Position numbers and translations under genes: made by a program
Shown: one piece after another, positions 1 through 33,950 of the stretch
Layout of the letters: each line of letters starts with the position of its first letter
Numbering within the stretch: position 1 is the stretch's first letter
The notes under the pieces: model-generated
What the model was told of the DNA's origin: nothing
Seen by the model: only the letters and a program-made list of their open reading frames with translations
Database searches by the model: none
DNA from: Thalia democratica
Taxonomy: Eukaryota
Reading direction: 5' to 3'
Length of the DNA: 64,000 nt
Assembly: GCA_965202585.1 (NCBI GenBank)
Contig: OZ241830.1
Span: 36,890,001 to 36,954,000 of the forward strand

Positions 1-2572
1 TTTCAATGTTTTTGTTTTATTTTTGGAATTGTATGTAGTAGTTTTTTCTTAGAATACTTTTTTTTTTTAATCGAATAGAAAAAACTATCGATACAAGAGG
101 AAACGCTTTAATTTGATTATCAATATAAGTTATTTAATTTTAAGTAGTTTCATGAACTATATAATATTTAAAATTTAATAGTCTCATAAATTAATTTTAA
201 CACATAGTTTGAAAATTATATACATAAAGCACTATTAAAAGTCACCAAAATGGTCATTTAAATGAGCCAAACAAGATCTATGAATTCAGATGAACATATA
301 CAGGCTCAGTTAGAAGTCTATTAATTCGTTTAATTTTAGTTTTTATAAAAAGTTATATGTCAAATAATAATATTTGTTACGAATACAGTATAAATATAAT
401 TCTTTACAGTTAGAATTAAAATTCTTATGTTTATTATTAATATAGATGAAACATATAGAAAATAGTAATATTTTTCTTAAGTAACGGTAATTTTATTTTT
501 AAAGTTTAACTCTCATGTTTAAAACAATTTCAATATTAGAGCTGATCTTTCAAAATTAAAGTTACAAAGTTTGAAGCTTACTTATAAACTGTAATTCCAA
601 CTAAGAAAAAAGTTAAAGTTTATTTTTAAAAACTAATTAACGCCATTAGCTCAAATTATCTAAAAAATGTAACACACCACTAAATGTTAATTATGTGTTA
701 AACTACATGTTAAACACGTGTTTCCGCCTTAATGCTTTACGTATCAGGTCATTTCTTGGCTGGTATTTATTTTATCACGAATTATGATGAGGTAATCTAA
801 GAGTTGAATTGCACTTACGTTTCAAGAATTTTGTTGCTTTTTGAGTTCAGTTTTGTAAAGCAGTGCGCAAACTAGTGTGCATTTTGTAACTGTGCACCGA
901 AAACTAAATTACTTATTTACAAGTTTATTGAATCGTAAATTTATTTATATAACAATGCTTCACTTAATTTATAATCAATATTACTGAGATTCTCAGTTGT
1001 GTTAATTATTTTATTCATAAAGATCTATTTTTTCAAATTCTATTGAATAGAAACGCTTTTATACTAATTATTTTTTGATTTCATTTTTATTAAATAAGCA
1101 TGATTCACAGTTGTTTATTTTCTCTTGTTTTGTTTCATTTTCACGGTAACTGGTATTCTTAAACCCATAAACAATTAAGTTTAATATACTATTTTGCTAT
1201 ATTTGACACAGTCGGAATTTTTAGGACTGAAACCGGGTAGTGAGTAAAGTAATTGATCTAAACGAATTTATTTATTATATTTATTAAGATATTATTATAT
1301 CTAAATAAGCTCTTTATTTACAGTGAAACGAGCTACATTTTTTAGTTAAGACAAATGACTTTTAACCTAAAAAAGAAAAGTTCAATTCAAAAACCAACTC
1401 TTAAATAAGCAAACTGGAAAACTATAAACATAAGATGTGCCAATTAGTTTTATGAATTAACTTAGTTTATATTGGATGTTATTTTTTAACTACATAAAAA
1501 TTAGTACAAACAAAAACATTAAAACAACCAATGAGTTAATACTTCAAAGTAATTGAAACCGTAAAAATTGATGAGAAAAAGTTTTGTAAAAGTATAAATA
1601 AAGTGAAATTCTATTTGTAAAGCTTGTTTACAACTGATTATCTCGTTTGATTCACTTCAAACGAGAGAAGCATTGTTTTGTTAAAAAAAATTAAATTGAA
1701 AAAAGTACTGAATCATTGTGACGTATTTTGTATGCGCGTAGCTTGCCTTCTTTATCTCATTATACTTCGGATTTAAGTTTAAGTTTTGAATCATAAATGA
1801 ACGATAAATGCTTCTTTTCAAAAACGAAAAAATTATGAATTGTAATTGGTTAGTCGAAATAAAAAGTAAGTGTTTTAATTTTCTCTTTAAAAAGTAAAGA
1901 TTATACAACATCAACTATAGTTTACTTGTGATTAAAACAACTAATTGTTATGTGTGTTTTTTCATAACTTTGGTATTATATAGAACTCAACAAAAGTCTT
2001 ACGCAAACAAATCAGTTTGAATAACGATTAAATAGTAGATACATAAGCATGATATACGTACTTCAAAGAAAGTATAGTCCATGTAAATACGTGTAAAACA
2101 GTGTTAAATTTTGATGATTGTATAATCAACAAAACTGTCAACTAATTTTATATTAATCAATTTTGAGATTAATATATAAATTAAAGTTGGTTTTGTTGAG
2201 TTTATTTGAAAACGACAAAAAAAAAGTGATAAATTGAACAAAATGAATAAAAACATTATTAATGACTTAAATATAATCAAAAGATAAATTAAACAGTTTG
2301 TAAATGTTTAAACATAGTAATTTCAGTATTAATTGTTTCAAATTTTAAGAAATAATCATAAAACGTTTAAAAAAAGTTCAGTTTTAAATTAGAATGTTAG
2401 AAAAATAAATTAATGATAAATTAATTTTGTTTTAAAAACACTATATGTGAACTTAAAATAGCAAGTCTAAACAGAACGTTGAAAAATCTCAAAAAACAAT
2501 AGCAATAAAAACAACATAAAAGCACAACATCAACAAAAAACCTTCAATAAAAAACAAAAAACATTAAAGCAG

Positions 2573-4306
2573 TTAAGCAATCTCGTAAACTGTGTGATTA
2601 AACTTGTCTCTTTTGTCAACCACTATTTCTCCTGGAAAAGCCCAAAAATTGCAGGGCAGAGGATCTTTTCGTTCATTATCCCAAAAATGCACGCCGCGGC
2701 CGAGGATGAAGACATAATTCACTTCCACAAGGCTGATAAAGAATTCAAAACTTAATATAATTTTTTACATATTATAAAGTTATTAAATTTATTTATTTGG
2801 CTCATTATGTATTACAACATTACTAACTAAATTGATCTATCATGATTAGTGTACGGCTGATTTGTTGGGTATGAATCTCTGTTACTGTAGATCTCCACTT
2901 TTACACCTAGTTTCCAAAAACTAGGTTAGAGTAAATTTAACAATAATTACAATCGTACCTAGCATTTAAATTTTTAAATAAATATTTATATTTATGATAA
3001 TATAAGATAACTAGTTAATATAAAAAAACAATGTTTGCGTTAGTTAAAACGTTGGTACCTTTGTTTAAAAAACTTTTACGCAGATTCGTTAGTTCTTTAA
3101 AATTGTTCTGTTGATCATCTGGTAAACTTAAAGTTGTAAACAAATTGACTGTCTTCAAACTTGGATAGTAAAATTTTAATGCTTCTATTAACAATTTTAA
3201 ACTCTCAACCTAAGCAAAAAAAAATAGTTCTCACGTGCAAAACTAATAAAACGAGCTAAGAGATAAAAATTAATAATCTTCAAAAAACTTTTAAACTTTA
3301 GTTAGCATACTTTTTTAGCTGTCAAAAAACTACTGAATAATTTTTTCTATATAATAGATAGATATTATATTTTAATACAAACTTGATCGATGGAATTGAA
3401 GTATCTATCTTTAATGTTTGCGCTCAAAATTTTCTCCTGCTACTGTTCAGGTCCCAGTTCTTTGATTATTCTTTTCCAGGTCACTGTCTTTTGGCTATGC
3501 TTCTTCTGATTGGGTTTTGGGTCGAACGAAAGTTTTTTGACCTGTAACTTATAAACAAAATACAGGAATTTTTATTACTTTACAAAACATAAATCTATAA
3601 TGCCAGTACTATTATAGGCATGTATTTGTAAGTTTTCATATAAAATCTAAAATAGAACCTAATGAATTTAGGTTACTCATTTTCTTTTTAATTATACATG
3701 TTTTCGAAACTGCACAAAACTTCTTATTCAAGTAACAATTAATTTTAATTTTTTTTCTAGTATGTAGAAAGTTTATAAATTGGTTTAAAGTATTACGACG
3801 TATGAATATAAACTAGATTTTTAAAAACACAAATTTTAAGATAGAGCAAAGAAAACTTTAGAAAAATGTAATAAGAAAACTAGTAATAATTTTTGAATCT
3901 TATTTTTTTTGTCTACTACTTTAGAATTGTTGTATTGTTAAAACACAGTTTTACCTTTTTCTCTGGTTCTTTTTTTGGAATAGTAGGCTTTAAGCTCGTT
4001 TTGGGCCATTCTGGTTTACGAGCTTGGATCTTTTTAATCAGTTGGCTGCAGTTCAAGTATTTTGCGAGTTTTAACAAATCAGTGTCACTACAAGTGTTGC
4101 CTAAATGATCTAAATAAGCAAACACTAAAAATGGTTTGACTGCCTTAAATTGCTGTTCATCACATTTAATTACTTTTTGGTTAAAATCATAGGCGCAAAT
4201 TGTAGCCAAAACGCATTTGTGTTCAGGAATTTTTTGGGTTTGATACGAAAATTCTATATCACAATACACATCATTTTGCTGTAGTGCACGCATACTTTGT
4301 CCTAGA
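2573..4306 (-). CDS. BTB/POZ + MITD1-C-terminal-like (PLD-fold) coding exons: 4306-3955, 3541-3383, 3209-3059, 2906-2828, 2732-2573. One in-frame TAG at 3442-3440, so possibly a null allele or pseudogene.
   Basis: All introns are GT-AG and the phases chain (0,0,1,2). The BTB-like segment reads YCDIEFSYQTQKIPEHKCVLA...FLVFAYLD...LLKLAKYLNCSQL. The C-terminus (ANIKDRYFNSIDQVESL...KTVNLFTT...KSFLNKGVKVEIY...NHDRSIYL...FILGRGVHFW) matches from memory the MITD1 pattern IEDPYI...KTIHLLTS...HGVLLEV...HDREIRF...IKIGRGLDYF. Terminal TAA at 2575-2573. Confidence 0.8.
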
Positions 4307-4371
4307 CTAGATAAAATATTATAATTTAGAGTTTATCTGTTTTTAGTATTAGTGATCTACGAGGTCTTAGT

Positions 4372-4497
4372 ATCCGGTTGGATCAAAATCTAAAAAAGCA
4401 CCGTATCCGAACAGATCCTATTTAGAAAATTTTATCTGGATTTTTATTTAAAAGTATCCAAATTCTAATTCCAAAGTATCCGGATTCGGTAGGATTC
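4372..4497. repeat. ATCCGG/CCGGAT-rich intronic repeat fragment, with a related patch at 6441-6498; probable MITE remnant
   Basis: Clustered tatccg/ccggat/ggatcc words in otherwise very AT-rich introns. Confidence 0.35.
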
Positions 4498-4783
4498 TAA
4501 TGTTATAAGTCTGATATATCAATTAAGAAACCATATACTCTAGAGTTAAAGATGAGAATCAATAAGAAAAAGTTTAGTGCTTTTAAAGTTAGTTATACAA
4601 CTTAAACTAGAAATACAAGACAACTTTAAATTGTACTGGATATTACGAGAAAAATAGCATGTTTTATAGGACCTGGCCGGATTCTTATTTTATATATTTT
4701 GTTAAATATATTTTAAAATATATTATTATATATTAATATATTCTAATTTAAATAATAATGACAAGTATTTCAATAAAAGATAC

Positions 4784-7516
4784 CTTATTCTTGATGAGTT
4801 CACTGCAGTATATTCACCAATTTCATTGCTATAATTTTTTAGCATACATAATTGATTTTCCACTTTGTTTATTTTTTTATTGTTTTTATTGAAATTTAAG
4901 ATGAGTAATGTTGCGTAAAAAACCTAAAAAAATTAATTTTGGTTACAATAAAGAGAATTTTAAACCCATTTTAAACCACTCATAAAAAAAATAGAACCAC
5001 TTAAACTCAAAACGTTATGCGTCCTATTGAAACAATACGGTGTTTCCCATTATACTTGATGAGAAGTTTTTTTTTTAATTTATACCTATATCCCTTACCC
5101 ACCTTACTAAACATTAAAAATTGATCAAAAATATAACTACTTATATTTAAAATTAGTTAACTTTAAAGAGTCTTATTGAATAGCTACGGTGTTTACCTTA
5201 ATACTTGCTAAGTCAGCAATAAAATAAGCTTATTTCCGTGTAATTTTGAATTTTATTTTATGAATATAGCTTTATATTTTAAATATGGTAATAAAAATTC
5301 TATTTTTTAATAATTTTTAATATGTTCGGGTAAGGTTAGTTAGAGGTTGGAGTAAAAATTAAAAAACTGACTCCGCAAATATTATTAATTTACCCACTCT
5401 TTATATTAATAAATACTTTCAAATTTAATACTAAATAATTCTCACTTTGACAAATAAAAGACTGATTGCCACACCGGCTGAACCAAAACAGTATGTCGGA
5501 AATATTTTTTCACACGTGATTTTCTCCATTTCATCTACATATTGGGGTATCATCGATTTGTTGAATAGAGCTTTAAATATTTATTATTCTAGGTTATCAG
5601 CCTTTTATACTTGTTATATATAGTAAATTTTAATTGCTTAAGAATCAAAATTCGATTGTAGTTGTAGTTAAATATTTAAATTAATAACAACCTTTAAACA
5701 TTATAAGATGTAAACAGAGTTGTTTATTTTAGGGTTGCAAAATGTTTTTAGCAAATTTTTTCGAGGTTTTAAAATTTCCTCCGGTTTTTAAAAGTACACA
5801 TTTTTGGGTCTATTTTTAGTTTTAATTTAAGTTCAATTTAAGAATCTGCAATAAATAGCAAAGTAAAAAAAAACATACTTTGAAGTTACTTTATTTGTTG
5901 TTTTAAATTTAAATAAAAAATGATAATAACAAAGAAATATTATCAACATAATAGCTATTTTGAGTCAAATCAAACTTTTACTACTAAACATGTTAAAGTT
6001 GTTTATATTCCAGGCTTTTTTATGTTTTTTTTTTCAAAATTCAGGTTTTTTTAGTTTTTTTTTCTCAAAACTTCTCAAATTCCAGATTTTTTAGAAAAAA
6101 TTTTCAAATTCCAGGTTTCTTGGCAGCCTTGTTATTTTTAATTAACAATAGCATTGAAACATTTTATATGGCTACAAGATAGTTTTGTTTACAAAATTAT
6201 TGTATATCAATTGAAATAGCTTCCACATATGACTTAGTATAAGATAAAAACATGAAATACACTTCACATATAAAAGTACTAATTACCTTCAAGTTCATAT
6301 TGAACTCTTAGATTGAAAATTACTCCGATCAATAACACAAAGAAGTTGATCAACATCAGAATGAGAAGCTGTTGAAAAATAATTAAATTTTAAACAAATA
6401 AGAAAAATAGTATTAGTGAGTATACCAGTGGACTACACGGTCCAATATTTGACCGGATCTGGACATTTTTTGCTTGGATCCGGAATCGGCCGGATCTAGT
6501 TTATTGGAAAGAATTTTCCAACATTAGAAATTTTCACTGACCTTTAGCAATTTAGCGCAACGCGCAAGTAATTTTGTAATTTATGATTTATAATTTAACA
6601 TAGCACTAAAAGCACATGTAAAAACTGACATTCTCTGAAGATTTTTAAGATGATTTTCCAAATAAACATTGTAACAAATAAACAAAGTAACGTATATTAA
6701 AAAAAAGGCCGACATATATTCATTGAGGAGAACTCAACTATTTCTAACAAACAAACTTTTGCACGCATTTTGCTTAAAGAATTGGAGACTACATATCAAG
6801 ATTACAACTATACATTTAATTATACCCCTATTTATAAATACATAAATACACTTGGTGCTCATAGCGGCTTTTAAACTGTTTATAAATCAGTTAAGATTGA
6901 TGTTTTAAAAAGTTTTATATTTAGTCATTTATAAGCATTTATTTCAAAAGATGCAAATATCAATTGAATTATATTTCAAAATTATTTAACTTTAAAGAGT
7001 CTTATTGAATAGCTACGGTGCTTACCTTAATATTTGGTGAGTCAGAAAAGGGATACTTTAAAATTTAGAAATGTTAAATTTTGCTAAAGTTTTTAGATTA
7101 CTGATTTTATTAGAAGGGAAAAAGATGAGCTTTTAAGTAAATAATTTAAAAATTAAGTTTTACTTTATGAACTTTAAAAAAATTAATAAAAAATGACCAG
7201 TACTACGTGGCTAACAAAAAAAATGATTTAAACTATATCATTCAAGCTGAAGAACCGCAACTTGTTAAAAAAGTAAATAAAAACTAGAATACAAAAACGT
7301 TTTGAAAAATTTGTTGAAAATATTAAAACTCACCACTCCTAGCATACTCTTGTCTTTTTTGATGTTGTTGATAAATCCAAGTATTCCTATTACAGTTGAC
7401 AGAACGCCTGAACTGATAATCATGGTAATGCCATCGGTAGTTTTTGCGTTGACAAGGCATTTTGCAGCATATTGTCTTGAGCGGATGCTGATACCTACTA
7501 ATGACAAACTGCACAG
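4784..7516 (-). CDS. Tetraspanin-like four-TM protein exons: 7516-7334, 6368-6287, 5570-5446, 4923-4784. The first coding exon was not located.
   Basis: The exons translate to LCSLSLVGISI...MIISSGVLSTVIGILGFINNIKKDKSMLGV | LLILMLINFFVLLIGVIFNLRVQYELE | ALFNKSMIPQY...CFGSAGVAISLLFVK | VFYATLLILNF...GEYTAV. Hydrophobic spacing and intron positions resemble tetraspanin TM1-TM4. Donors are gtgagt, gtaatt, gtgaga and gtatct, and the phases chain 0,1,0. Confidence 0.7.
5157..5191 (+). repeat. 35-bp exact dispersed repeat, second copy at 6986-7020, weaker third copy near 5010-5060
   Basis: ttaactttaaagagtcttattgaatagctacggtg occurs identically at both positions. Confidence 0.8.
5730..6131. mobile_element. 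hAT-like MITE of the AGGGTTGCCA/TGGCAACCCT family
   Basis: Left end tagggttgcaa, right end tggcagccttg, internal tandem aaattccaggttttt subrepeats. The body sequence (tttttgggtctatttttagtt) is shared with the copies at 7.6 kb and 14.9 kb. No convincing TSD. Confidence 0.6.
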
Positions 7517-7600
7517 CTGGAAATAAGATACATGTCAATTAGTTGTAGCTAAGTGTATAGTTTTGTTTTATTTTGAACAGTTATGGTTTTTAAGTATACA

Positions 7601-8183
7601 AGTTTTTGGGTCTATTTTTAGTTTAATATGAAGTTTTGGAAAAAAAATGTTTCAAATAGTAAAACAATATTGGTAAGACGCTAGAATACAACTTTAATTT
7701 TTTTTTTAGTAAAAATAATTAAGGATAGCAAAACGAAATTTGTGTCTATGATTGATTTTTTGTGTTAAAACAGAAACTTATTACTCTACATGTAATTTTT
7801 TTTTCGAATCTAGGTTTTTTAGTCATTTTTATTCAAAATTCCAGGTTTTTCAGTGTTTTGTTCAAAATTCCAAGTATTTTTTCAAAATTTCTTATATTCA
7901 AGTTTTTTTAGTCTAAAACTTTTAATTCCAAGTTATTTTTAGGTTTTTCGAGGATTCAAGGTAATTTTGAAATCTGCTTTAAAGCTACGTGTAAAGCTAC
8001 TATAAATGTGTCTCTTAATAAATAATATTCTAAATGATACATAAAAAGTTACTTTATATGGTAGATTTTCGTATAAAGCAAAAATTTTAAATACATACTA
8101 ATAATGTAAAAATTGTTTTAAGTTACCAGGTTTTCTAGACTTTATTTCAAAATTCTCAAATTCAAGTTTTTTCGACAACCATG
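7601..8183. mobile_element. Degenerate copy or copies of the same MITE family
   Basis: tttttgggtctatttttagtt body and repeated caaaattccaggttttt units; degenerate right end ttcgacaaccatg. Confidence 0.5.
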
Positions 8184-8725
8184 TATTATAGTACATTATT
8201 GTGCCTACACAAAAGATTTTAAATTAAATTAGGATCACAGAATAAAAATCAGTCTAAAATAAGTAAATATTGAATAAAATATATTTGTTATTGCTGGTTA
8301 TATACTAAGTATTTATAAGTATATTAGTTATTAATTTTTATTGTTTTTAGTTAATAATGATATTTATCGCCTAAATCGTAAAGCTATTTGAAACCTAACG
8401 AACTAATATTTTTTGCACTATACATAATATGTTTAATTAATAAACTAAAAAACTTTTCTTAAGGTATACTAAAAAGATGATTAAATAAGTATTTGCGTAA
8501 ACTTTTTTTCATTAACTTTGTTATATTCTTCTTAACTCAAATATTATATATATATATAAGTAAAAATTTCAAACTTATATTTCAAATATTGATCAGGGTT
8601 TTTTATTTTGGGATGTTACTACATATTTTGAGAACAACTGCTATATAATAAGTATTTTGTTAACATATGATTAAACTGGCTATTAAAAAAGGTTAATTAT
8701 AAAAGTTAATTTATTTAGCTTAAAC

Positions 8726-9022
8726 CAGCGGTTCTTAACCTTTTTATTATATTTTACCCTTTTATAGAGGGTAATTACAAAATTTACCCCAAGCAAAAAT
8801 ATTTTAATAAAATTTGATAAAAAAACTAGATTTTTTGAAAGTTTAGATAGCAAAATATTAAAATTCGTAACTTTAAACAGTTTTTTGAAGCAATGAAAAT
8901 TTACAGTTAAATACTAACTTAAAATTTTGTTAGACTTATAATAAACATTAACTTACATTACTTATAATCAAAAAAATTAACCTCCTTAAACAAAGGATTT
9001 TACCTTAGTTTAAGAATTGCTT
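8726..9022. mobile_element. hAT-Charlie-type MITE of about 300 bp
   Basis: Left terminal inverted repeat (TIR) cagcggttcttaacc; right end gtttaagaattgctt matches its reverse complement at 11/15; subterminal tttaccc repeats. TSD not clear. Confidence 0.55.
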
Positions 9023-10284
9023 TTGAACATTGGATTATTAATTCAGGTTTTATAAAGTTAAAGCTTCTACTATTTGTTTTTGATTTCATAAAAAAACTCA
9101 ATCTACTGTATTGTTTGAACAAAAATTCTTATTTCAACTAAATGTTTTAAGTTTCAAATTTTAATTTGTTAAAGGTTGTATATCTCTTAGTTTTGTGACA
9201 AAAGCTCTTAAAATTTCTTTAAAAAAAATTTCTTGTTCAACTTAAACTTATATTTTAATAAAATTAATAAATTAGTCAGTAAATTTTAAACTATAAAAAT
9301 TTGAAGAAAAATATGCTAAATTTTAGGAAAGTTGATAAAACTAGTTTAGTCTTTGCTTTATCTTTTTAAGAAATTCTAAATATAAGTTTGTTTCACTATA
9401 TTTTTTTAAACTGAGTATTTTTTTTAGGTATATCAAGTTTCTGGTAGCTTAATTATAAAAGCTAAAAAAACAAATTCCGAAATCATTATGTCCCCTATAA
9501 ACTTACTAATCTATTAATTAATAAAGTTACATTAAAAGTTAGTTTTAAATAAATAAATGAAAACATTAATAACAAAAGTTTTAATAACATTTTGAAAAAT
9601 ACAAACACTTATTTTAAAGCACTTTTAAAACATAAAATAAATAGTTTTATTTCTAATTAAACAATTTAAACTTACTAATAGTAGTATATTGACTAATAAA
9701 AGTAGTCTTTTTGCCAGAAATCCCATTTTGAAAATCAACTTTTAGGATTTCTAATCAACTTAACACTAAAAAATGTAATTAAAGTTTTATTAAACATTGA
9801 AAAATATGTTAAATCTCAAACTGTACACAACACTTAAAAAAATAAATTTAAAATAAAACTTTTATTTTACATACAAAATTGGCAAAATTTGTTATAAAGC
9901 ACTGTAAAATCATTAAATGTTTTAACATAAAGGCAACTTGTTTAAGGTTGTGTAAACTTTAAACTCTATAGAAAACATTTTTGCTCATCTTTTTATATAT
10001 GAATCATGTTTTTATACATAAGTAAACATTTAGTTAAGATTTATTTTTAAAGGAATCATTACTTTTGATTTGATTAGTATCAATATTTTAGTATATGATT
10101 ATGACTGACAATATTATTTTAAGAATGGTGTAAGGTACTTATTTTAAACTGTGTCAATTACTTAAAACAGTTAGTTACTTTAAATGTGGTTTTGAATAAT
10201 TTTTTTTTTATGATGACAAGAATTTTTCAACTATATGCAAATTTTTCTTTTTAAATCAAAATCTTACTACTAAAATGTAAAAAC

Positions 10285-10452
10285 TGTTTAAAATTCAAGG
10301 TTTTCCAACTTTTTTGGTAATAAATGTTCAAAATTCAATGTTTTATAGAGATTTTTGTTCAAAACTTGAGGTTTTGTTCAAAATTTCTCAAGTTCCAGGT
10401 TTTTTAAGCCTAAATTGTCAAATTCCAGGAATCCAGGTTTTTTGGCAACCCT
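10285..10452. mobile_element. Right-end fragment of the AGGGTTGCCA MITE family
   Basis: aaattccagg/atccaggttttt subrepeats ending in ttggcaaccct. Confidence 0.6.
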
Positions 10453-11376
10453 ATCATTTGACATCAGTGGCGTCGCGTGGTATTTTTGTTAGGGGGTGCT
10501 GCAGATTGAGTTGTCAACTTAAAAAAATCCCCTAATTTGAAACACTAAAATAAAGCTCAAGGAGTTAGAGAGAAATAGGGAAATTTGCAAGCTAAAAGTC
10601 TTTAAGATATTAGCTTAAATACTTCTTAATATGAATATAAAAAAAACATGATATACATACTTAAAAACATATATTTTATACTTAATTTGTAATATACGAG
10701 AAATTTGTTTAAAAGTACTTAATGAAGGAAATAGATTACTATGTTGCTAAAAAAGTTTATCATAATACAGTACATAAATTTACAATATATCATACATTGA
10801 TAAAAAGTTTGTATGAATTAACATAACTTAATTATAAGAGCAAAATAAGTTTTTTTTACAGATTAAAAAAATATTTATTTTTCGTGTTTAAATAACTTCT
10901 TACAATACAACTTTAAAAAAAATTAAAAACTACGTATTTAACTATTTAAGTATCAATGCTTTCATTAACAAAAAGAAGAAAACATGTTTAAAAAATTAAA
11001 ATTAAGGATCAAAAAGTTTTATTAATAACTTTTTTGTAGATTATAAAGTTAACTCAAAAAGTAAAGTAACTTTTAAAGCAAATAAAAACAAATTGCTTTA
11101 AACAGTAACTTTGTTTCTTTTGAGTTACTTACTTATTTTTTAACAGTAAAAAAAACATTAAAATTGAAAAAAAAATCACACGAGAAGGAATTTTCTATTA
11201 AAACTTTTACAATGCAACACAAAGGTCTTGAAAAAGTTATAATTATTACAGCAGTAAAAAAAAATTGACTTTATTATTAAAATAGTTTTATACACTAAAA
11301 AATTAAATAAAATTCTACATACGTTTTGAAACATATATAATTTTAATATCATTTATAAAAAACTAAAAAGAAAAAT

Positions 11377-11900
11377 TTAGTCAGAATTAGCTTTCATATA
11401 GATAATAAACAAATGAAGCAAAATTTGTTTAAAAGGTCTTTGTTTGCAAATTAAATAACTACAAGTTGTAAAATAACCTTTAAAAGTTTATATCTAGGAT
11501 CAAAAAATAATTATCTAAAACAACTAACTTTTACTAAAAACATAATTGAAGTTAAGTCAGAATTAGTTTTCATATACAAAATTAATAATCAAAGCAAAAT
11601 CTATGTGTTAGTTCTTAATTTGTTGACTAAAAAAATAAAATTTGTAAAATAACCTACAAGCATTAGCATCTATTTAATGAAATACTAACTAAAAACATAT
11701 AATGTATCTGAAAAAAAATAAAATATAAAGTTTAGTCAAAAGTAGCATTCAGTACAGAGAATTAAAAATAAAATATTTTAGGTAGTTCCTATTTGCAAAC
11801 TATAAAAATTAAAAGTTTGAAAGTAACATATAAACTTTAATACTTAATAACAATAAATATTAATCAAAAACACAAAACAAAATAATCTTAATTAATCTCA
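11377..11900. repeat. Three degenerate tandem units of about 177 bp inside the hAT element
   Basis: The unit head ttagtcagaattag recurs at 11377, 11553 and 11732, each followed by similar aagcaaaat...ttgcaaa...gtaaaataacct segments. Confidence 0.65.
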
Positions 11901-12619
11901 GCTAAAAAATATATTAGGATGAAACAATGTTTCAAATATACCTTAGCTCTAAAGACAGTTATAAAGCTAATATTTTAGTTAAAACTGCAACAATCTTTGT
12001 AAACATAATAACTTTTTCCTCATAATATATTTTCTTTTTAAAGTAACAAACACATATATAAAATAAAATATTTTTTTTCATATAGTTCAAACTTTTAGCT
12101 TAGTCACATAATAAACTTCAAACCTCTTGATGTACACTCTTGGGTAATTGAAATACCTGGTGTTGGTCTGCTGTTTTTTAACTTAAGCTTTTCAACCTCA
12201 TACAAAGCATTTATATCAAGGCGTTTAAGCTGATCCACAGTCCATTCTTTATAATTTGTAGTTTGCATGTTGTTATTTTTTAAAACAACCTAAAAAATTA
12301 ATTATGCCCGTGTTGAACTATTTGTGAAAATCTTTACACGGTACTGATATTTCAAAGCTAATTATTTTTTTTAATCTGAAAACTATCTTGTAATATATAA
12401 GTAACGCTTTAATACAATTTCTAATGCTAATTTTTGTTATAAAAATATGATAGACCCCCTATGTCCTTTGTATTAAACAATTTTTTCATTTAAATTAAAT
12501 AGATGAAACTTGTTAGTTTTAAAACAGGTTGACATAAGTTTAACTATGAGAATTGTCTTTTGTTGTGTAAGTAAGTTTATCTAAAAACTTTAATGTATTT
12601 GCCTAAAAAATCAAATTGG

Positions 12620-13400
12620 AGATAAACAATTAGTTTTTCTTTTGTTAAGTCAGTTTGTACTTTCCTCTTTTTATAAAATTTTAGTGCTCTCCAACTTTAA
12701 TTAACTATATGTCAAAATTCGATTCAAAGAGCAATTCAAAACAATTTATAGTTTACTTAAAAGTCTACAAAGTAAGCTCAAGCTGTATTAACCTATTTTA
12801 TAAATGCTTTGTTATCAATTTAAATTTCATGTCAAACCATACAGAAATCATGGAGTGGTATCAGAGTTCTTTTTAAAAAAATTTTTGTTATTTTGATCAG
12901 AATCAAATAGATGCTTAAAATAAAACTAGGGCAACAACAGGTTCTTTATGTAAGCAATTTTACAGAAAAAAAAACTATTTAACTATATCTTACCTTTTCC
13001 TTTATTTTCAGCAATTGTTAACAAAGTTTTTAGCAAAATAATTAAGATTTTTTGAAATTTTTTAAGAATAGAGTTTTCAATTTTTGAGCGGTATTTAGTT
13101 TAAAATAATTTCTTTATATCTTTAATCATAATCTTGTTCTAAATATTTTTACATTAAGTTGAGAAAACTTTAGGTTGTAGATCTAAACTTGAAAATTTTT
13201 ATTTTTTACACAAATTTTATTATCAATATAAGGCAGTTACATTTAAAACTTGCATGTAACTTGTTAGCTACATATTGCTTATTTCAATACTAAAAATTAT
13301 CAAAAAACAAAGTTAATTATATTTAAAAGAAATTCAATCATTTTATGTAAATAAGATAGGTAGTCTTTGTTTTCTTTGACTTTAAGGTAATCTGGAATAA
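12620..13400 (-). pseudogene. Possible decayed transposase remnant within the hAT element
   Basis: Stop-riddled minus-strand readings EPVVALVLF (12944-12918) and HIVN*SWRALKF (12711-12676) resemble the ExxVALxLF and VVNDxAERxxK motifs of some hAT-type transposases. Motif recall only; no alignment was run. Confidence 0.35.
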
Positions 13401-14856
13401 AAAATTAAGATATATAAAAAAAAACTTAATGACCATTTTTTAAAGAATTATCAATAAAACACACACAAATTTATTGAGTTTTGAATTTTTTTTAATAATA
13501 TCCTTTAAAAACTTGTTAGAACTTTTGGCTTATATAGATTTTTTTGTATATGTGTTGACCACTGGGTTTTGATCTTGCAACTTTCACCTCAAAAACTAAA
13601 CTTTGCTTTGACTGTATTCAAGTTGTTTACATTTAGTAGTTTTTTCAATGTACAATGTTCAAAAACTAATTAGCAGTATATTCATATTCACTATATTCTT
13701 TATATTCAGTTTAATTCACATAGCGCTGCATTGAATGCAGCTCCAAAAATAAGCTTTTTAACAACTTTTTGTATAGGATATTTGTATATGTTTAAAATGC
13801 AGCACACACAGTTTTATCTTGCAGCGCCAGCCATTTAACGAATATTTAAAAATTGAATGTAAAATTTGAAAAACTAACAAATTTATCGTTAAGTTCAATT
13901 AAAAAAAAGCAGGAAAACTGAAACAAAGTGAAATTTTCTTTTTTTTTCTTTTTTTTTTTTGAATAGGTGGGACTGCAGCTCCAGTGTGCCACCCCACGCG
14001 ACGCCCCTGTTTGACATCATCATTTACAGAATTGCAACTATTACAAAAAATTAAGCCACCCTGAGAGACCAAAAACTGGCTGACTTACAGCATCAATTTT
14101 TTTAAATAATCAAAATAAAAATTAAAAACTAACCTCACTTTTCCTTAAACAAAAGTGTGTGGTAATCCTAAATAAATAAATCACCATTTTAGCTTAAAAA
14201 TATTAAAATAATTTTGTACTCACTATTTAAGTTTAACTTTTTTTTATGCTATTTAAATGAAATATAAAAACTTGGCTTAATTAAAGTAACCTAAAGGCTA
14301 ATTTTTTTTCTTTAAGATTTTGTGATTTATTTTTAAAACCTTATTCTAAATATCAACCTTATTCTTTCTAAACCATTATATTTCGTAGTAATTTTTTATC
14401 TGTATCAGTGGCAAAAATTAAACTTAAAAGTACTTTACAATTGACAAAGATTAGAATATACTGTCAAGCTATTTCAGATGTGTTTCTAAATAAAGTTCTA
14501 AATACAAGGTTGCCACTCTTTGAGTCATAAAACCTGTTGTGAGTGACAACAAACTTTCATGGGCCATCATGAGATTTTTCTTAAACTTTGAAATTTTCTT
14601 TCTAATTTTAAATTTAAAAAAATGAATTGTTTTAATAAAATTGATTATACCTTTGATCAACTGAGCCTCATTCAAAATCTCGAAATAAACTGGCCTGAGA
14701 TTTTCAGAAATCCTAAAACTATCCTGATATTATTTAAAAAAACATCCAGAGTCAGTCTGAATTTAAAAAACAAATTTAAAACATCTGAGAGTTATACTGA
14801 GTTCCCTGCAAATATATATTTTAGACACTATTTTATTCCTCAGTTTGTATTATATA

Positions 14857-15281
14857 CAGGGTTGCCAGACGTTTTTTCAAAGTTTCTCCAGGTTTTCTAG
14901 ATTTCTGCCAGGTTTTTAAAAGGACACATTTTTGAGTCTATTTTTAGTTTAAATTAAGTTTAAGGTAAAAAACTGTGTTAAATAGCCTACAAACATTGAA
15001 AAGATACAATAAAGCTACTTTAAATATGTTTTTCAATAAAACAAAATTTGATGATGACAATTTTTTTTTATTTGTATGATAGATTTTTTGAATTTTACTA
15101 CTGAACGTGTGAAATTTTTTAAAATTTAAGATTTTTACAGGTTTTTTTTTTAATTTCATGTTTTTTCTTTTTTTTCAAAATTTTTTAAATTCCAGGTTTT
15201 TACAGATTTTTTTTTTGTATAAATTGTCAAATTCCTGGTTTTTACAGGTTTTTTCAGATTCCAGGTAAAGTGGCAATAATG
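14857..15281. mobile_element. AGGGTTGCCA-family MITE
   Basis: Left TIR cagggttgccag, degenerate right end tggcaataatg, aaattccaggttttt subrepeats, body shared with the 5.7-kb copy. Confidence 0.65.
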
Positions 15282-18200
15282 TGTATATTTTTGTCCTATA
15301 ATAAAAAACCTTCAAGTCTTTAGGTATTAAACTTCTTTTTTTTTTAACTATAAATTTTTCCAGTTTTTTCAAACAGTATCAAATTCTAGGTTGAATTGCC
15401 ACTAAGTTAAAAAAATTATAAAAATATTTTACTAAAAGGTTTTGTTTTAGAGTCAATGTTAAATTTCTAACTTTTTTTGTCAACCATTAACTTTAAGCTT
15501 ACAACTTTATTAAACAATTAAATTAATATCATGGATGTCACTCTTTGAGTAAAAATGTTCCTGTGTGACCAAAAACTGTGCTTTTAAAAATCTCAAAAAT
15601 ATGTACATTTTCAATTCAAATAGTTATTGGAGTAGAACAAAAATCTAGTTTTTAAATAAAATTGGCTGAAAATAACAAAGTATAGGATCTAAAATATTCA
15701 AGAATTATAAAAAAAAGGACTGAGATTAAAAAAAATTAAAACTTGCTCAGTATTTAAACAAAAATTCAAACTAGCCTGACTTTTCTTAAGGTATGTTATT
15801 CTATGCCAATACCCAAGTATACTATAATACAAATATTAAAACATTATTCAATTTTGTTGTATTTTTATAACATATTTTATAGTTTAGTTGAAATTTCATT
15901 ATGACAAAATTTGATGACAAAATAGATATTTAAATCAAAATAATTTAACAAAACAAATTAGTTTTAATAAACAATTGAAATGTAATATCAAGAAAATCTT
16001 AGTTTTAAATGGGATTATCAGATAATTAATAAAATAATGAGAACTTGAAAAGTCTATATCATCAAGAAAAAAAAACTATCCTGAAAATATGCAGAAATAT
16101 TACTTACTTTAAGGAATATCTATTTATTTTATGTATTTAGACTAGCTTGAAATTAATTCAACTATGTAGAACTACTTTCAACATAAAACTTGTTTTAAAT
16201 TAAGATACTAAATTATTTTGCTTTACAAAAATAATTTAATTTTAAGTGCTACTAAAAGAATTAGTTGTTGTTTGTTGTGTTTTATAATTTTAGACCATTT
16301 AAGATTGATAATAAGTCTAGCTTTATATTTCAATCCACAATTAAAGAAATGCTTATCAATACTTTAAATAATAAAGAGGTTGTAGTACATATACATAGCT
16401 TTTACAATCTCAAATTCTCATTTATTATATTAAAATTATTAATTTACAACTATATATATTTTAGCTTATTATTAATTTTTGACAGACTCTGTAAGTGCAC
16501 ATCTTTTTTTTTTCCTTTGTATCTGATACAAATGTGTATTAAAAAACTTCAAAACAAACATAGTATAACATATTTTGGCATTAACTTAGTAAAGTTCTAA
16601 TAATTTTAGAAAAGATTTTTAGATGAAATAAGCTTCTATTGTTACCAAAATATAATTTGTTAATTTTGAAGGTAAATGAACAAAACAGGGTAACTTTTAG
16701 TATTAAATACATGACTTGAGGAAGAATGTGTTATATAAATAAACAAAATAAAAGATTAATAATTAAATACCCCTTTGGAAGTATAATAAACGAAAGATGA
16801 AACTTTTAATTATAAGCCTTTAAGTAAATTTAAAAGAATACGTAATATAAATTCAGTTCTTATTTATTTCTTTGTTTAAAGTTAAAAATAAAATTTTTTC
16901 AGTTTTAGCAAGCTGCACTTAGTATTATAAATAAAAGATGTTTTTGATAATAATTTCTAAATTTAAGAAACTAAAATCTTATACATAATAATCTTAAATT
17001 GTTTAAAACTATAACATTTTTAAACTCTAGACCTGCAACGCTGTATAAAAATATCTGCTTAAGTTTGGTAAAATTAGATACAAATTACTTCAAAGGTAGA
17101 TAAAACTAAACTAAACAAGTAAACATGTGTTATCTTTAAAATATGTAGTACATAACGAAATAATACCAATTTAAAATGACCGAAAAATAAAAATGAGCTT
17201 TTTTTTATAATATTAAACTATGATCTAAACATCAAACGTTAAAATTAAAAAGGCAAGTTTCGTTCTGTGAAATTTAATAATTTATTCATTATCAATATAT
17301 AAATGCTTAAATATGCAGAACTGAATTTTTGAACATCAGCTTAATAGAGTTGAAATAGTTTTTTTGGACTTTCTAATCTCATTTAATGTTTTTGATGAAA
17401 TATACTTCTAGTTTCAAAAAGTTTTTAAAAAAACAAATTGTTAAATATTGGACAAAAATCAAACTTTTAATTAATAAAAACAAATAAAGAGTTAACATTT
17501 TTATATTAAACTTAGGAGCTTTTAAGTGGATTGTAAAAATTACTATAAACATAACAATGTTTTTGTTTTGTATCTATTCGATAACTTTTTCAATGTGAGC
17601 AAGCTGAAGCGAAATTCTAAACGCTTGTGCTAATGATTAAAACACATATCCTTTACATTTTGCCAGCAAAAAGGAATAAAATACAATTCCTCTCCCGAAA
17701 ATTTAAAATAAAAGGAAGTGTAATGAAACTAATGCTGTTTACTTGTTCTTTTTTTGTTTTAAATGGCAAGTATGTGAACTCAGTCAACCAGAAATTTCTG
17801 TTGAAATAACACATCAATTGCATGGAGTTGACCAAAAGTGTAGTCATGCGTAACATAGGTATATAAACCAGCTGCAGTGGATGTTTGAGTCAAAACCATC
17901 CAGAGGACAGTTTTAGTGTCAATTTGAAGCTGAAACGTTTGAACTTTCTAATTGGCCATTGATAAATTGTAAAAGCTTTTTTTTTTTTGATTTAATGTAG
18001 TTAATTCTTGTTTTAGATTAAACATAATGTTTTTTTCAGACTTTGTACTTGTGTGAAGGTTTTGATTTAATTTAATAAAGTTTCTAAAATATGTGGCTGT
18101 TTATATTATCATTTTATGTTTGTAACAAAATATAGCCTGATGTGCATAGTTTATATAAATATATTAAGCCTTATCAAGTATTAGCTAGGATTAAAACTAG

Positions 18201-20673: not shown

Positions 20674-23661
20674 ATGCTAGTGAAAAGTACTGAGAGTAAA
20701 TCCATCGAAATAAAAGAAAAAGTTGAAAAACTTAATGGAAAATCTTTTAAGTTTCATGATGAACAAAGAAGTTTTGTAAAGTTTTGCAAGAAAGTTTCAT
20801 TCGAACGCAAATTTGCTTACATTTCACAATCTTTCGATGATTTTATGATTTCAACTAAAATATGTCAGTTTCTTTGTTTTATAAAATATTTATCGTGGTT
20901 GAGTTTCAAGTTTTTTTAGTTGATTAAACTGCTTTTGAATAGTAGAAAACTTATTTATTACTAAATTTGCTATTTTATTACAAATATATTTAATATATAA
21001 AAATATAATTTTAACTGTTTACAGTACTTTATAAAATTATTAACGTTTATATTTTTTTGCATTTGAATATGATTAATTTAGTACTGAAAATCTCTTATAA
21101 ATTACTACTGTATAAAAAAGTTGTACTTGATTTTAATAACCTGATAAACTACAATGTCATTATAATAGTAACAATGAAAACAATAACATAATGGTAAAGG
21201 TGCTAACTAACTAGTCTATTTGTTAACAGTTACAAATAAATTAGTTAGTTAACACGACGATCCTTCTAAAAAGTTTAATAGCTTAAACATAGAGCTAAAA
21301 TAAAGTATGATTTTTTTTAACTTGGGTATATTGGGTCGGTGCTAAATTTCATAGAAAAATTGGGACACTATGTTTTTTTATGAGTCCTCGACGCGTATCG
21401 GAAAAAAAAACCATGTAATATCTAAAATTGTTCTTTTAAATATTTTGTAAAAAATTAAGATTATTTAAAAGTTTTTTATAGTCCTTGAAGTTTATCACAT
21501 AAATATATACAACTATTTAAATGATACTTCTTAAATATTTTCTACTAAACTAACTTAGTTTGTCAGTGTTTTGTTTTTTATATAAACTATATACTTTTTG
21601 AAATAAAGACCATTTTGTTTTCAAGTTTTGGTCTTTAATTTTGGTTTTCTTGGTTAGTCAAAAAGAATCTTTCTCAAAAAAAGCTGAACTCACTGACTAA
21701 TAAATATATTTATGGTAAACTTTTAAAAAATGGTTATTTTATTTTTTTTTTGTTTGCTGCGAGAAGCCTTAAAATGTCTATAAATTGTCGTTTAATTTAG
21801 TGGTCTTCAACCTTTTCAAAAACTACGCACACTAAAACGTTGGAGAACAGATTCTGTACACTTTAGACTTAATAAAATGTTTTACTAAAACTTAATACCG
21901 TTTTTAAAATAAGTAATACTATTTTTCATTTGTTGAGGGCCTTAAAGTAGAAATAACGGTTAAAAAATTGTTAATTTGTGTTTTAATTATCTTTTTCTCA
22001 TAAAGGTAGACAAAACAAGCGTCATCTAAAAATTATTTTATTCACCTTACTAAGTTTACCGTGCACAGTACAAAATTTTTTATTCACACTAGTGTGAAAA
22101 AGTGCACACGTTGACGACCACTGGTTTAACTAACAACTTTATTATTGTTACTTAAATAAGCTTTTTACTCAGTAATTTGAGCATTTAACATAAATACTTA
22201 TACAAGTTTTTATAATGAATCTATAAACATTTTTCAGCCAGCTTACCGAAAGGACCGAAGGAAATTTTACCATTACTCAAAACAAACAGTGCTTTTCTCA
22301 ATGAAAGACTAATAAAGAATTTTTGCACCTTCATACAAGACACTATTTCTGTAAAAAACAACATACTTTATTTCAAGTTAGCTTACTTCTTTAATTTGCC
22401 AAATGATGTTCGGTTGAAAATCATGGCTTGCACGGAGCGATGGTTCACCTCAGTTTGCAAAACCAACAACTTCCGCCAGTTGGATTTTGCGCTCACTAAA
22501 AGGATTCTATCTTCTTCCAAACTGCACATTACTTCAGAACTCCAAGTGTTTAATGCTGCAGACGACTGGATTAGTTACAATACTGAAAAAAGAAGCAAGT
22601 TTGCAAAATATCTTTTGCTAGCAACACGGCTTCCGTTGTTGTCGGAACCTGCTTTGAGTTTTCTCGTGAACGGGGAATCTTCTATTTGCAAAGTTGTTGA
22701 GTGTAAGCTTTTAGCAAGCAATGTTTTGATTAAAAACAAAGAAAGTTTAGACAAACTGCCGAAGAAAAGTTTCGAAACGAGGCACTGCGATCAACTCTTG
22801 TTTGACGTTTTCGCCTACAGCGGACGATGTCAAGGTTGTGTAGAATTGACGCAAGTGGACGGTAAAGACTTGAAAAAAGTCCAACGTTCGCCGGTGAACG
22901 GGTTATTATTGGAAAACGAACATGTTGCTAATGGAATTTGTTTGAAAGGTGAAGTTTATGCTTTTGTGAACAAGGGTTTCGGTAAGGATACGGAAACGAA
23001 GATAAAATAATATTCGCGAGCTTGCAACGCTTGGCAGAGGGTGACCGAAATCAGTTATCGCTTCAAGTTCTGTGCTTGCGTTCTCATTGACAAGATATAC
23101 GTGTTATGCGGCTATAACAGCTCTTACGACGTTCAACGTTCCTGCATTAAGTACGACCCTGCCGAAAGCGACCGGGTGACGGAGATCGCGATGATGTTGG
23201 AAGCGAGGGCGTTGGCGGCCAGCGCCGTTTACCAAGGAAAATTGGCGGTTTGCGGCGGCGCAGTTGAACGCGACGGCGAGTTTGTTTCCACGAACACCTG
23301 CGAGGTCTACGACCACGTTGCCGACGAGTGGTCCTGCATGCCGAGCATGGTGCACCCGAAATCCTGCCACGACGTGGTTGCCGTGAAGAGCAAGCTGTTC
23401 GCGATCGCAAGCTGTTACGCGTCTTGTGAAGTTTTTGACAATATTTCAAACAAGTTCGCCGTCATCAAACGCGGGTTTCGATGCGAAGAGAATCCCGCGG
23501 TCGTGGCCACTTCGGTGGGAAGCAAAATAGTTGTTTTCGGAAGGCAAGATGGGGAAGTGGTGTTCTACGATATGGAAAAGGACGAATGGTGCGAGCAGCC
23601 GCGCGATCCTTGTCCCGGCGGATTTAGTTTCTGCTCGAAAATGCCGCATACGCAGTTTTAA
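20674..23661 (+). pseudogene. Kelch-like (KLHL-type) BACK + Kelch gene with a divergent N-terminus. Exons are about 20674-20897 and about 22238/22242-23661, with a single in-frame TAA at 23008-23010.
   Basis: BACK-like segment FRQLDFALTKRILSSSKLHITSELQVFNAADDWISYN...RLPLLS. Kelch repeats include KIYVLCGY...YDP, KLAVCGG...CEVYDHVADEW and KLFAI...CEVFD. The two listed ORFs are in the same frame and are joined by *YSRACNAWQR. The exact exon-1 donor is ambiguous. Confidence 0.8.
21798..22123. mobile_element. 326-bp hAT-Charlie-type MITE in the Kelch gene intron
   Basis: TIRs tagtggtcttcaac and gttgacgaccactg match at 12/14. The TSD is gtttaatt (21790-21797) versus gtttaact (22124-22131), 7/8. 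Confidence 0.85.
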
Positions 23662-26600
23662 CGCGGGATATTTAGCATGACGTAAAATCTGTCAAACATA
23701 ACTTATTACGTTTGCTAAATACTATAACTTAGTTGCATGCAGCTGCTTTATCCTTTCTTCTTACTGCGCTGTTGGTTGTTTTCGGGCAGTATATAAATCT
23801 TGACTCATATGAGTAAAGGTGTTGCATGCATTACAAGATATTTGTACAAAATTCATGCTTGTTCGTTTTTTTTTTTAATAAATTAGAGACACAAATCATT
23901 TGTTTATTGTTGTTGTATTGTTTGTTGTGCTATGTTAGATTCAGGCATCAAAACCTGGGCCACTTAAACTTGACACACAAAAAAAATAAAATTTAAAAAT
24001 AAATCATATTGAGCAAATTAAGAAACAAAATACAAATTCACAAATTTTATTCTAAATTGCTTAAAACTTCCATTATAATATGCTATTTAATGAAAATATA
24101 TTATTATTATTATTATTATTGTTTTTCAACTAGCAAGTACAATTTAACTTCAAAAATTTTCAATGTAGTTACTAAGGTGTAATTACACTTACTTTAATAT
24201 ATATTAGTTATTTGTTAAACAAACCATATAATTTTAAACTACATAGCAATTGTGAATTGAATGAAATATTGCAAGGTCCAACACTTATACATCACATAAC
24301 ATCAACAACAGCAGGAATAAAGAAAATGAAGTGAAATGAGCAAAAAATATCAAGTTATGCAAATTTATGTGTATGTTTTTTGTGAGAAAAGGTTAACTGG
24401 ACATACTTACTTTTGACAATGACGTAACAGTTAGCATGCACTTATTTAGAAAAATTAATCTTACCATTCTTCTCAGGCAGGCATGGAGGTAGTCAGAACA
24501 GTTTTTTTATGATAAGGAAATAGGTCTACCGATTGTAATCGTTTTCGAACATAATCATTTAGAGTTATAAGTAGCTAGCTGTGTATTTTTCATAAGAAGC
24601 TTACTCTAAATTTATATTTTCTTTCATTTAACTCTTTTGTCAGATGTTTACATAATCTTACACTTAGTCATTCAGCTTAGCAAACAAGCTTTTTTATTTG
24701 TAGTTGTAATATCTTACTATCTTGATAGGAATAGTTTACAAACAGTTTTTATAAAATCATCTTTTATGAAGGAAACTTTTGAACAAATTAGACATTATCA
24801 TGAAAAATCAAAACTATGTCGACAAAAAGTTAATCTTTCATAATTTGATATTTTTTGCAGTAGTTAATCTCTTATAAGTAGAAAAATGTTAAGTTTATAA
24901 AAGTTACAAGTCTTTCTTTATATATTCTTTTGGTACTATTTCTTTCATAAAACACTCAAGTCTTTTCAAACAAGATGTGCACAGCTTTTATAGACTGATT
25001 TTTTGTCTTAATTAGGTATTTAATAAGTTTTAATTACGCTAAAAACCAGTTTTATCTGTCATTTATAATTAAGTAATACTATATATTAATTAAAAGTCTA
25101 TAAATTGTAGACTTTCAATATGTACACTATGTCTTTTTGGAACCCTTTTTATTGTAGCCTACAATATAATAGTTAAATGTTATACAAGACTGAAGTGTTC
25201 TTTTCATGCATAACACTGTGTGAATGAAAATAATAAAGTTTATTGTATTCCTTAACAAGAAAGCCAGAATTGCAATAAGATTTTTGGAATTTTAGCAGGT
25301 TGTGTTTATTTGCCAACTACCTGAAATTTTTATTTGGGATTGGATTTTGGGAAGGTGCCGGCCAATTCGGGAATTTCCCCTAAATCGAAAACAATTTTTA
25401 AAATAAAATTTTAAGTTTTTGATTTTATTTAGGGCAGGTTATGCTGTCATCTTCAATGCTTTTTAAATGTGACAGCATCTTAAAGCACACAAGTTGTTTA
25501 CAAAATACATTATTAACAGAACATATTACACCCACTAATTGGGTATATCGAAAACATAGCTTTTGATTTAGGGCAGGTTATGCTATGAGTGTCCTTAGTA
25601 TACCCATTTGCTTAAAGAGCTTTGATTTTTATAATGCACATTTAATGTGGCTGTGACTTTATTACATATTTCAATGCTTATAAGTTGTTTGTAATCCTTT
25701 TAATAACAGGACATATTACAGCTACTGTTTAGGTTATTTATTAAAAAGCTTACGCATTCAAAATATATTTTTTATTGCTAATTGGTACTATATTTTAAAA
25801 GTTTATAAATTAACTGGTTGTAATATTAGTTAGTCATGTTAATAATTAAGTGTTAACAGTTGTTTGTTGACCAAACATAACTTTTAACAAAACAATTCTT
25901 TATCAGTAACTATTAATTACCATCACAAGTTACTCCTAGTTCATTTAAAACTTAATTTTTACGTTATTATACACAATATATTTGTCCAGTTTAACTAAGA
26001 TAAATAATTTAAAAACTAAACAGCTAGTCTCAGTAGTAGTATATAAAACTTATTATTCACTCAGTAAAGATATACATGTCTGCGCTAATTATAGTGTTGT
26101 CCCAAAATACATTTGCTTACACCTTAGTAAAACATACAATTCCTATTTCTTTAGCTTATTAAACACTTTAATATCTACGCGAAATATATTTTTCAAAATA
26201 AGTAATATATATATAAAGTGGACTGGACAGTGTTTCAGAAATTATTTCCTTAACCAAAAATTTACACGATATGTATGATAAAAATCTACGTATGTAAAAA
26301 CCTTCTTTGTAAATAACATTAGTTCAATTGTTGTGGAGACTGTTTGTTTAGCATGCTGTTTAAAATACTTTTTTAAGGTTTGATAATGTATATAACAACA
26401 TTAAAATATCAGAGTTGTCTAGTTATATAACTGATCGTACTCAGTTTTATATAATTATCAATATATATAATTTTTTATCCGAAAATTTCAAACAATTTTA
26501 TGACTTAAGTCAGCAAACAATAACACTACTTTTAAAGATTTCTTAGTAGTAGTTACCAATTTTAATAATCATAAAACTGTAATTTTGTCAAGTTTTAAAT

Positions 26601-33663: not shown

Positions 33664-33950
33664 ATATTTTGATATTCAATTAAACTAGCTGCAAATTTTT
33701 TATGTTTTAGTTAGGTTACTTAGTATAAAACATTTAAATAATCAAATAAAAACTATAAAAACGTATTAACCAAAAGTAGTATCATTCAAGCCTGTTGCTA
33801 ATAATGTTGGTATAGTAAGTTAATCAGAAATAGGTGACTAATTGTAATATATTTTTTCTTAATTTTTTAAAAGCACGAAAGATTGAAAAATAAAATTTAA
33901 AAACATTGAAACTGATGGTAGTTTACATTCTACAAATACCCGACGCGTAC

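Follow-up and report, generated by a model that had tools for sequence, protein, structure and literature searches.

The MIT_C domain is, to our knowledge, seen in almost no setting other than MITD1, in which it is paired with the MIT domain and tethers ESCRT-III to membranes during abscission. A locus on the minus strand of the Thalia democratica genome raises the question of whether this module has acquired a different partner. The locus lies within a 64,000-nucleotide stretch of DNA, hereafter the window (contig C6, positions 36,890,001-36,954,000, in the 802 Mb assembly), and the initial annotation of the window had proposed that a BTB domain stands in front of a MITD1-like domain in the place of MIT. 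Three points decide the matter: whether the BTB exon and the exons downstream of it form one gene, whether the C-terminal module is MIT_C, and whether the gene is intact. Coordinates without a contig name refer to the window, which consists of AT-rich eukaryotic DNA with a GC content of about 25%. Elsewhere in the window, positions 22001-24000 and 30001-34000 have a GC of 0.31-0.41, compared to a background of 0.20-0.27, and are probably coding.

Exon structure of the locus

Five exons, designated A to E, were reconstructed on the minus strand from position 4308 down to 2573, with GT-AG at every border and compatible phases throughout. GC is 26-42% in the exons compared to 17-21% in the introns. 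Exon A (4308-3955) encodes a full BTB domain, located at about 4287-4024, followed by a Lys/Pro-rich tail, ARKPEWPKTSLKPTIPKKEPEKK. The first ATG of exon A is at 4293-4291, candidate acceptors lie upstream at 4308/4307 and 4303/4302, and the donor, AAG/gtaaaa, is in phase 0. Exon B can be read in two forms. The long form, or linker exon (3541-3383), begins at the phase-0 acceptor ttacag/GTC, ends at the phase-0 donor CAA/gtttgt, and reads VKKLSFDPKPNQKK...GPEQ, a TAG, and then QEKILSANIKDRYFNSIDQ. The short form (3439-3383), which was the version chosen in the initial annotation, begins at a tag/CAG acceptor at 3440/3439 that is weak and is preceded by a purine-rich stretch. The detectable MIT_C match starts in this short form, where KDRYF aligns with the DxYI motif. 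The GC of exon B is 0.38-0.41, compared to 0.21 in the adjoining introns.

The three remaining exons, also on the minus strand, carry the rest of the module. Exon C (3209-3059) follows a phase-0 intron, encodes the MIT_C core (VESLKLLIEALKFYYPSLKTVNLFTTL...) and has a phase-1 donor. Exon D (2906-2828) encodes the segment GVKVEIYSN...TNHDRSI+TA and is followed by a phase-2 intron, with HDRSIY straddling the junction between exons D and E after the isoleucine. Exon E (2732-2576, with a TAA stop at 2575-2573) encodes the C-terminal part of MIT_C, YLVEVNYVFILGRGVHFW...NHTVYEIA, and its protein is 94% identical to that of a second copy on contig C1. The phase-1 intron between exons C and D is specific to the window gene and is extra relative to the MIT_C genes of the genome. 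Spliced readings of the locus comprise 266 aa with the short form of exon B (261 aa from the ATG) and 300 codons with the long form.

Exons B to E contain no methionine, and the MIT_C part therefore requires an upstream coding exon. The sole compatible upstream coding exon is the BTB exon, the phase-0 donor of which fits the phase-0 acceptor of exon B. The phase match, the lack of a methionine in exons B to E and the evolution of the linker exon as coding sequence (see below) together support a single fused gene rather than two, with the splicing itself inferred. Exact spliced-junction patterns for D-E and A-B had no match in metagenome contigs, and a sequencing-run search with the stretch returned three runs of unspecified type, each with a low share, and no RNA run.

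Two open reading frames that lie upstream were considered for a tetraspanin link to the BTB exon. The ORF at 5580-5434 ends at a phase-0 donor, AAA/gtgaga, which is incompatible with exon A, as its two candidate acceptors require phase 2 or phase 1. The ORF at 7534-7268, within the duplication shared by contigs C6 and C1, matched Pfam Tetraspanin only weakly (E 0.014, below the cut-off). No support was found for a link between tetraspanin and BTB.

Exon A encodes a BTB domain

When compared to Pfam BTB (PF00651), exon A matched with an E-value of 5.8e-8 and 33.3 bits (cut-off 20.5), with residues 8-95 covering profile positions 3-103 of 110. An ESM Atlas feature search with exon A returned BTB clusters, and the best 10 named matches all belonged to the BTB family or clan. 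The nearest solved sequences were the BTB domains of BACH1 and NAC1, which matched weakly (E 0.04-0.45). A single-sequence AlphaFold2 model of the BTB exon was too poor for use (mean pLDDT 49.5, pTM 0.33). The sequence contains no BACK or 3-box after the BTB core, only the Lys/Pro-rich linker. Like short BTB/POZ proteins without BACK, Kelch or zinc-finger partners, the window gene has a full Pfam-type BTB core, here within one exon, and it has no 3-box/BACK, Kelch, MATH or zinc fingers. It differs from those proteins in its partner domain, a predicted PLD-fold membrane binder.

With the BTB exon as the query, phmmer found no match at E <= 1e-3 among 1.84 billion representative proteins. The self-match was absent too, which indicated that the library holds no annotated or transcript-derived protein of this kind. 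Within the genome, a search with the BTB domain found no relatives other than its own three copies.

The C-terminal module is a divergent MIT_C domain

The C-terminal module comprises approximately 148-150 aa and contains KDRYF, HDRSIY and LGRGVHFW. Pfam gave no MIT_C match for the extended exon B, C, D or E taken singly, and an Atlas search with exon E returned nothing; the lack of Pfam, PDB or Atlas matches for single exons is attributed to their short length. Searches of the PDB by phmmer with exons C and E returned GINS and glutamyl endopeptidase, both of which were chance matches. In a six-frame genome-wide scan with PF16565, the window locus was not among the 20 candidates scored.

A profile HMM was therefore built from eight MIT_C domains, mostly of this genome: five spliced multi-exon domains, a single-exon MIT_C-only ORF, and the two database relatives of that ORF, which were the only close relatives found in a homologous-protein search with it. 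The seeds were verified as MIT_C by Pfam PF16565 and by their match to the human MITD1 structures 2YMB and 4A5Z (E 1e-19). The spliced C-terminus of the window gene scored 26.9-29.6 bits against this profile (E 3e-8 to 2e-7 in a 1003-sequence set), compared to 6-7 bits for the best of 1000 shuffled sequences. When the window and C1 copies were compared to the seed alignment by hhalign, the probability was 92.5% (P 4.9e-7, 101 columns), compared to 0.2% for the reversed control.

The alignment is colinear, pairing IKDRYF with IxDxYI, LLIEAL with FIEA, LKTVNLFTT with LKxIxLxT, HDRSI with HDRRI, and ILGRGVHFW with KIGRGLDIY. The MIT_C core motifs DxYI, HDRxI and GWxIKIGRGLD are matched in order by KDRYF, HDRSI and NYVFILGRGVHF. 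Intron positions are also held in common. A phase-0 intron after "...Q", directly before [IV]xx[FL]xx[FL]IEA, is shared by the window gene and every one of the genome's five multi-exon MIT_C genes, and a phase-2 intron placed 2 nt after HDRxI is found in the window gene and in four of the five. In the fifth, the canonical MITD1-like copy, the second intron lies 5 codons later and is in phase 1. These results support the homology of the C-terminal module, in a divergent form, to the C-terminal domain of MITD1, as the initial annotation had suggested from its motifs. Profile comparison thus bore out the annotation where Pfam recognized BTB in exon A and where the spliced C-terminus matched our own profile and the seed alignment, but not where Pfam was applied to single C-terminal exons.

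Compared to MITD1 (Pfam MIT PF04212 and MIT_C PF16565; 2YMB, 4A5Z), the window module is homologous over about 105 of the 142-145 profile positions and retains the motifs DxY(I/F), HDRxI and GRG(L/V)xF. It differs in having one extra intron and a highly divergent sequence, and its reference copy has an interrupting stop. The MIT domain of human MITD1 binds CHMP1A/B, CHMP2A and IST1, which are subunits of ESCRT-III, and the C-terminal domain dimerizes, a process that requires residues 88-123 (PMC3496609). A review describes a PLD-like fold for the C-terminal domain and states that abscission depends on its binding to membranes (PMC6015221, citing Hadders et al. 2012). In the window gene, about 12 positions at the start of the MIT_C profile are undetectable, and they fall within residues 88-123 needed for self-assembly of human MITD1 (PMC3496609).

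BTB probably stands in the place of MIT

The MIT_C family is expanded in this genome, as found in the PF16565 scan. A canonical MITD1-like gene with MIT and MIT_C is located at C2:28272805-28276920 on the plus strand. Four further MIT+MIT_C genes are related to it, at C2:57469765-57472559 (minus strand), C2:60082984-60087561 (minus strand), C1:96378050-96380444 (plus strand) and C9:54998384-54999859 (minus strand). These four have additional N-terminal exons, one of which gives a weak match resembling the Not1 domain DUF3819 (E 1.8e-4). The single-exon MIT_C-only ORF used as a seed (C2:30194304-30194708, minus strand, 150 aa) matches Pfam at E 7e-24 and human 2YMB/4A5Z at E 1e-19, and has NVNR in place of HDR. 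Contig C8 holds two weaker partial MIT_C matches.

One gene of each multi-exon type was searched for MIT. Pfam identified MIT helices (E 1e-5 to 7e-5) in the upstream exons of the genes at C2:28.27 Mb and C2:57.47 Mb, and the upstream exon translations of the other three MIT+MIT_C genes were closely similar. In the two genes searched, MIT helix 3 and the start of MIT_C occupy the same exon. The window gene, in contrast, has BTB at its N-terminus and no MIT domain, and tblastn with the MIT exons of the paralogs found no MIT-like exon in window positions 1-30000. It would thus lack the predicted ESCRT-III (MIM) binding of MITD1. It is also not the MITD1 orthologue of this genome by domain content, as the N-terminal MIT domain is absent from it and the canonical MITD1-like gene is the one at C2:28.27 Mb.

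The best scorer against the window domain was a profile of the four related MIT+MIT_C paralogs (18.6 bits), and their family is the likeliest source of the MIT_C exons. Since BTB precedes MIT_C, no MIT exon lies nearby, and the other multi-exon MIT_C genes keep MIT, exon shuffling that replaced MIT by BTB would be the simplest history. The initial annotation had proposed the same exchange, and the comparison with the MIT_C genes of the genome agrees with it. The literature on MITD1 with BTB and on PF16565 yielded no description of a BTB + MIT_C architecture. As far as this analysis and our knowledge reach, BTB–MIT_C is a new, lineage-restricted architecture within the MIT_C family.

The window copy carries a premature stop

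An in-frame TAG on the minus strand at 3442-3440 interrupts the long form of exon B at codon 152 of 300, or codon 147 counted from the ATG. It precedes nearly all of the MIT_C coding sequence: the detectable match begins directly after it, at MIT_C profile position 13-14, and nothing ahead of it aligns. Downstream of the TAG there is no methionine at which translation could restart. Alignments revealed that the same site is CAG (Gln) in both other copies of the locus, the paralog on contig C1 and a haplotig on the unplaced contig C1508. In these two copies the long exon B frame is open from ttacag/GTC (3541), an acceptor located 102 nt upstream of tag/CAG. The additional 5' segment of the long form encodes about 33-34 residues, has a GC of 0.41, and differs from the paralog by four synonymous and one nonsynonymous change, the stop aside. 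The native linker exon most likely starts at 3541.

The earlier description of a BTB exon spliced through a Lys/Pro-rich linker to about 150 residues bearing the three motifs was therefore correct in part. The features, the GT-AG borders and the phases are in place, but the open frame depended on the weak tag/CAG acceptor, and the native exon contains the TAG. The TAG could be a base error of the primary assembly, because the two other copies read CAG. As the C1508 haplotype still has CAG, the TAG probably marks a null allele that is segregating.

The C1 paralog and the C1508 haplotig

A whole-genome search found three copies of the locus only: those of the window, C1 and C1508. The C1 paralog (C1:15.2465-15.250 Mb) lies within a duplicated segment that extends over 14 kb or more and is 92-98% identical between C6 and C1. 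The duplication spans window positions 2001-16000 and beyond, compared to C1:15243000-15258010, and takes in all five exons. In the C1 copy, an insertion of 1.67 kb with a 9-bp target duplication on its flanks splits the BTB exon, and the donor of exon A reads AT instead of GT. The insert (C1:15248030-15249698; L020:5031-6699) belongs to a repeat of 1.64-1.67 kb with inverted terminal similarity between positions 1-231 and about 1546-1669, and the repeat family has 2914 first-look candidates genome-wide and includes copies whose identity reaches 99%. The repeat resembles a non-autonomous DNA transposon with recent activity. When the native exons were examined for an intact frame, none was found in the window copy, owing to the TAG, or in the C1 copy, owing to the transposon and the lost donor.

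Window positions 2710-23810 align colinearly, at 97.5-99.2% identity, with the unplaced contig C1508 (17.5 kb), and this identifies the contig as the alternative haplotype of the same locus. The contig has seven one-base indels in homopolymers within exons A to D, close to the contig end, and these look like consensus errors. Approximately 3.5 kb of the window, at 10467-14009, has no counterpart in the C1508 haplotig or in the C1 paralog and is probably a haplotype-specific insertion.

Short fragments of 18-25 aa that resemble exon E were found at C2:1486603-1486677 (L031:5607-5678) and on contig C71 (L032:4728-4781 and L033:3754-3810). They read FLVDINYYYILGREVHFW and GRGIHFW-NESNNLLGCNFFGFHGE. 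With no surrounding ORF and no BTB near them, they were rejected as further gene copies, and they may be remnants left by older copies or else similar by chance.

Selection on the BTB and MIT_C exons

Rates of substitution were estimated from the window and C1 copies, for which the substitution counts are small. Over all exons dN/dS was 0.34, with values of 0.23 for the BTB exon A, 0.12 for exon B (5 synonymous and 3 nonsynonymous changes) and 1.16 for the MIT_C part in exons C to E (3 synonymous and 14 nonsynonymous changes). Exons A and B together had an excess of synonymous changes (Fisher p 3.5e-5; dN/dS about 0.2), whereas exons C to E had none (p 1.0). The 3' half is less diverged overall between the two copies, which is compatible with a later gene-conversion event that may have taken place there.

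Changes specific to the window copy were polarized with the haplotig, and all five were nonsynonymous: A29E, D39A, Q152stop, H185Y and N224K. The branch to the C1 paralog carried 17 synonymous and 18 nonsynonymous changes in exons A to D. This pattern fits constraint after the duplication followed by a recent loss of constraint. The initial annotation had treated the gene as intact, and that view is not supported, given the premature TAG, the transposon and the lost donor in the paralog, and 3' MIT_C exons that show no constraint since the duplication.

Discussion

The reading that we lean towards is a lineage-specific fusion gene that is now decaying, the reference haplotype carrying a null allele that segregates. 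The least likely alternative is that the C-terminal 150 or so residues are not MIT_C at all and resemble it by a chance likeness of motifs. Such a likeness would sit well with the single exons that have no Pfam, PDB or Atlas match, with the absence of the locus from the 20 scored candidates of the PF16565 scan, and with the E-value of 0.008 that was obtained when a profile was made from the canonical MITD1-like copy alone. It does not sit well with the full profile (E about 1e-7, compared to 7 bits or less for shuffled sequences), the hhalign result, the colinear order of DxY, IEA, LKxxxL.T, HDRxI and GRG, or the two introns that agree exactly in position and phase. Chance resemblance is for these reasons largely refuted already, and we regard it as very improbable. 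It is also improbable, if less extremely so, that there is no fusion and that a BTB-only read-through ORF of 125 aa (4293-3916) lies beside an MIT_C relic that has lost its 5' exons. Exon A ends in a good donor at a phase-0 boundary, for which exon B offers a strong acceptor of matching phase. In that frame exon B has evolved under constraint as coding sequence, exons B to E are without a methionine and no other coding or MIT exon lies upstream within 30 kb, and the five exons were duplicated together. Two separate elements would nevertheless agree with an ORF that remains open from 4293 to 3916, ending 13 codons into the intron, and with 3' exons that are neutral while BTB is constrained; moreover, the splice from exon A to exon B is a predicted one.

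More weight is due to the idea that the gene is functional, although we consider it doubtful. On this view, the TAG would represent a mistake in the assembly, the null member of a heterozygous pair whose other allele is intact, or a codon that splicing at the tag/CAG acceptor bypasses. Both the haplotig and the paralog have CAG, splicing to the short form gives an uninterrupted frame of 261 aa from the ATG, BTB and linker have evolved at a dN/dS of about 0.2 since the duplication, and the one-base indels of C1508, being in homopolymers by the contig end, are likely consensus errors. The window haplotype, however, has accumulated five derived changes that are all nonsynonymous and none that is synonymous, and MIT_C exons C to E have a dN/dS of about 1. 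The alternative acceptor follows a purine-rich stretch and its use would drop about 33-34 residues that evolve as coding sequence. Furthermore, no related protein was found among the 1.84 billion representatives, and no RNA run matched in the sequencing-run search. A functional BTB–MIT_C protein from the CAG haplotype, acting on membranes as an oligomerizer or Cul3 substrate adaptor independently of ESCRT-III, is a tentative proposal and on present evidence an unlikely one.

Under the favored reading of a decaying fusion, the history of the locus would run as follows. Most likely, one phase-0 BTB exon came to lie ahead of MIT_C exons derived from a member of the MIT+MIT_C family, giving a lineage-specific five-exon gene. 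Its ancestral product would have comprised about 295 aa, with a full BTB domain, a Lys/Pro-rich linker of approximately 55 residues and a divergent MIT_C domain. The intact protein is predicted to have oligomerized through BTB, or possibly to have served as a Cul3 adaptor, with MIT_C anchoring it to acidic membranes and no coupling to ESCRT-III. The gene would then have been copied from C6 to C1 as part of a segmental duplication (14 kb or more), with purifying selection acting afterwards. Both copies now appear to be undergoing loss, the reference haplotype by the change from Gln to stop and the C1 copy by the young transposon that splits it and by the lost exon A donor.

The weight of the finding is limited to one lineage and to a gene that had no match as protein or RNA in the searches made and is probably decaying. 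Within these bounds, the locus is a compact case of gene birth and death, in which exon shuffling, constraint and segmental duplication were followed by independent inactivation through a nonsense change and a transposon. If a functional protein is made from the CAG haplotype, it would amount to a natural experiment in which the part of MITD1 that binds membranes is separated from the part that binds ESCRT-III. A BTB–MIT_C protein would suggest a membrane-anchored BTB scaffold or ubiquitin-ligase adaptor, and BTB in the place of MIT would show the PLD-like membrane module to be an independent, reusable cassette.
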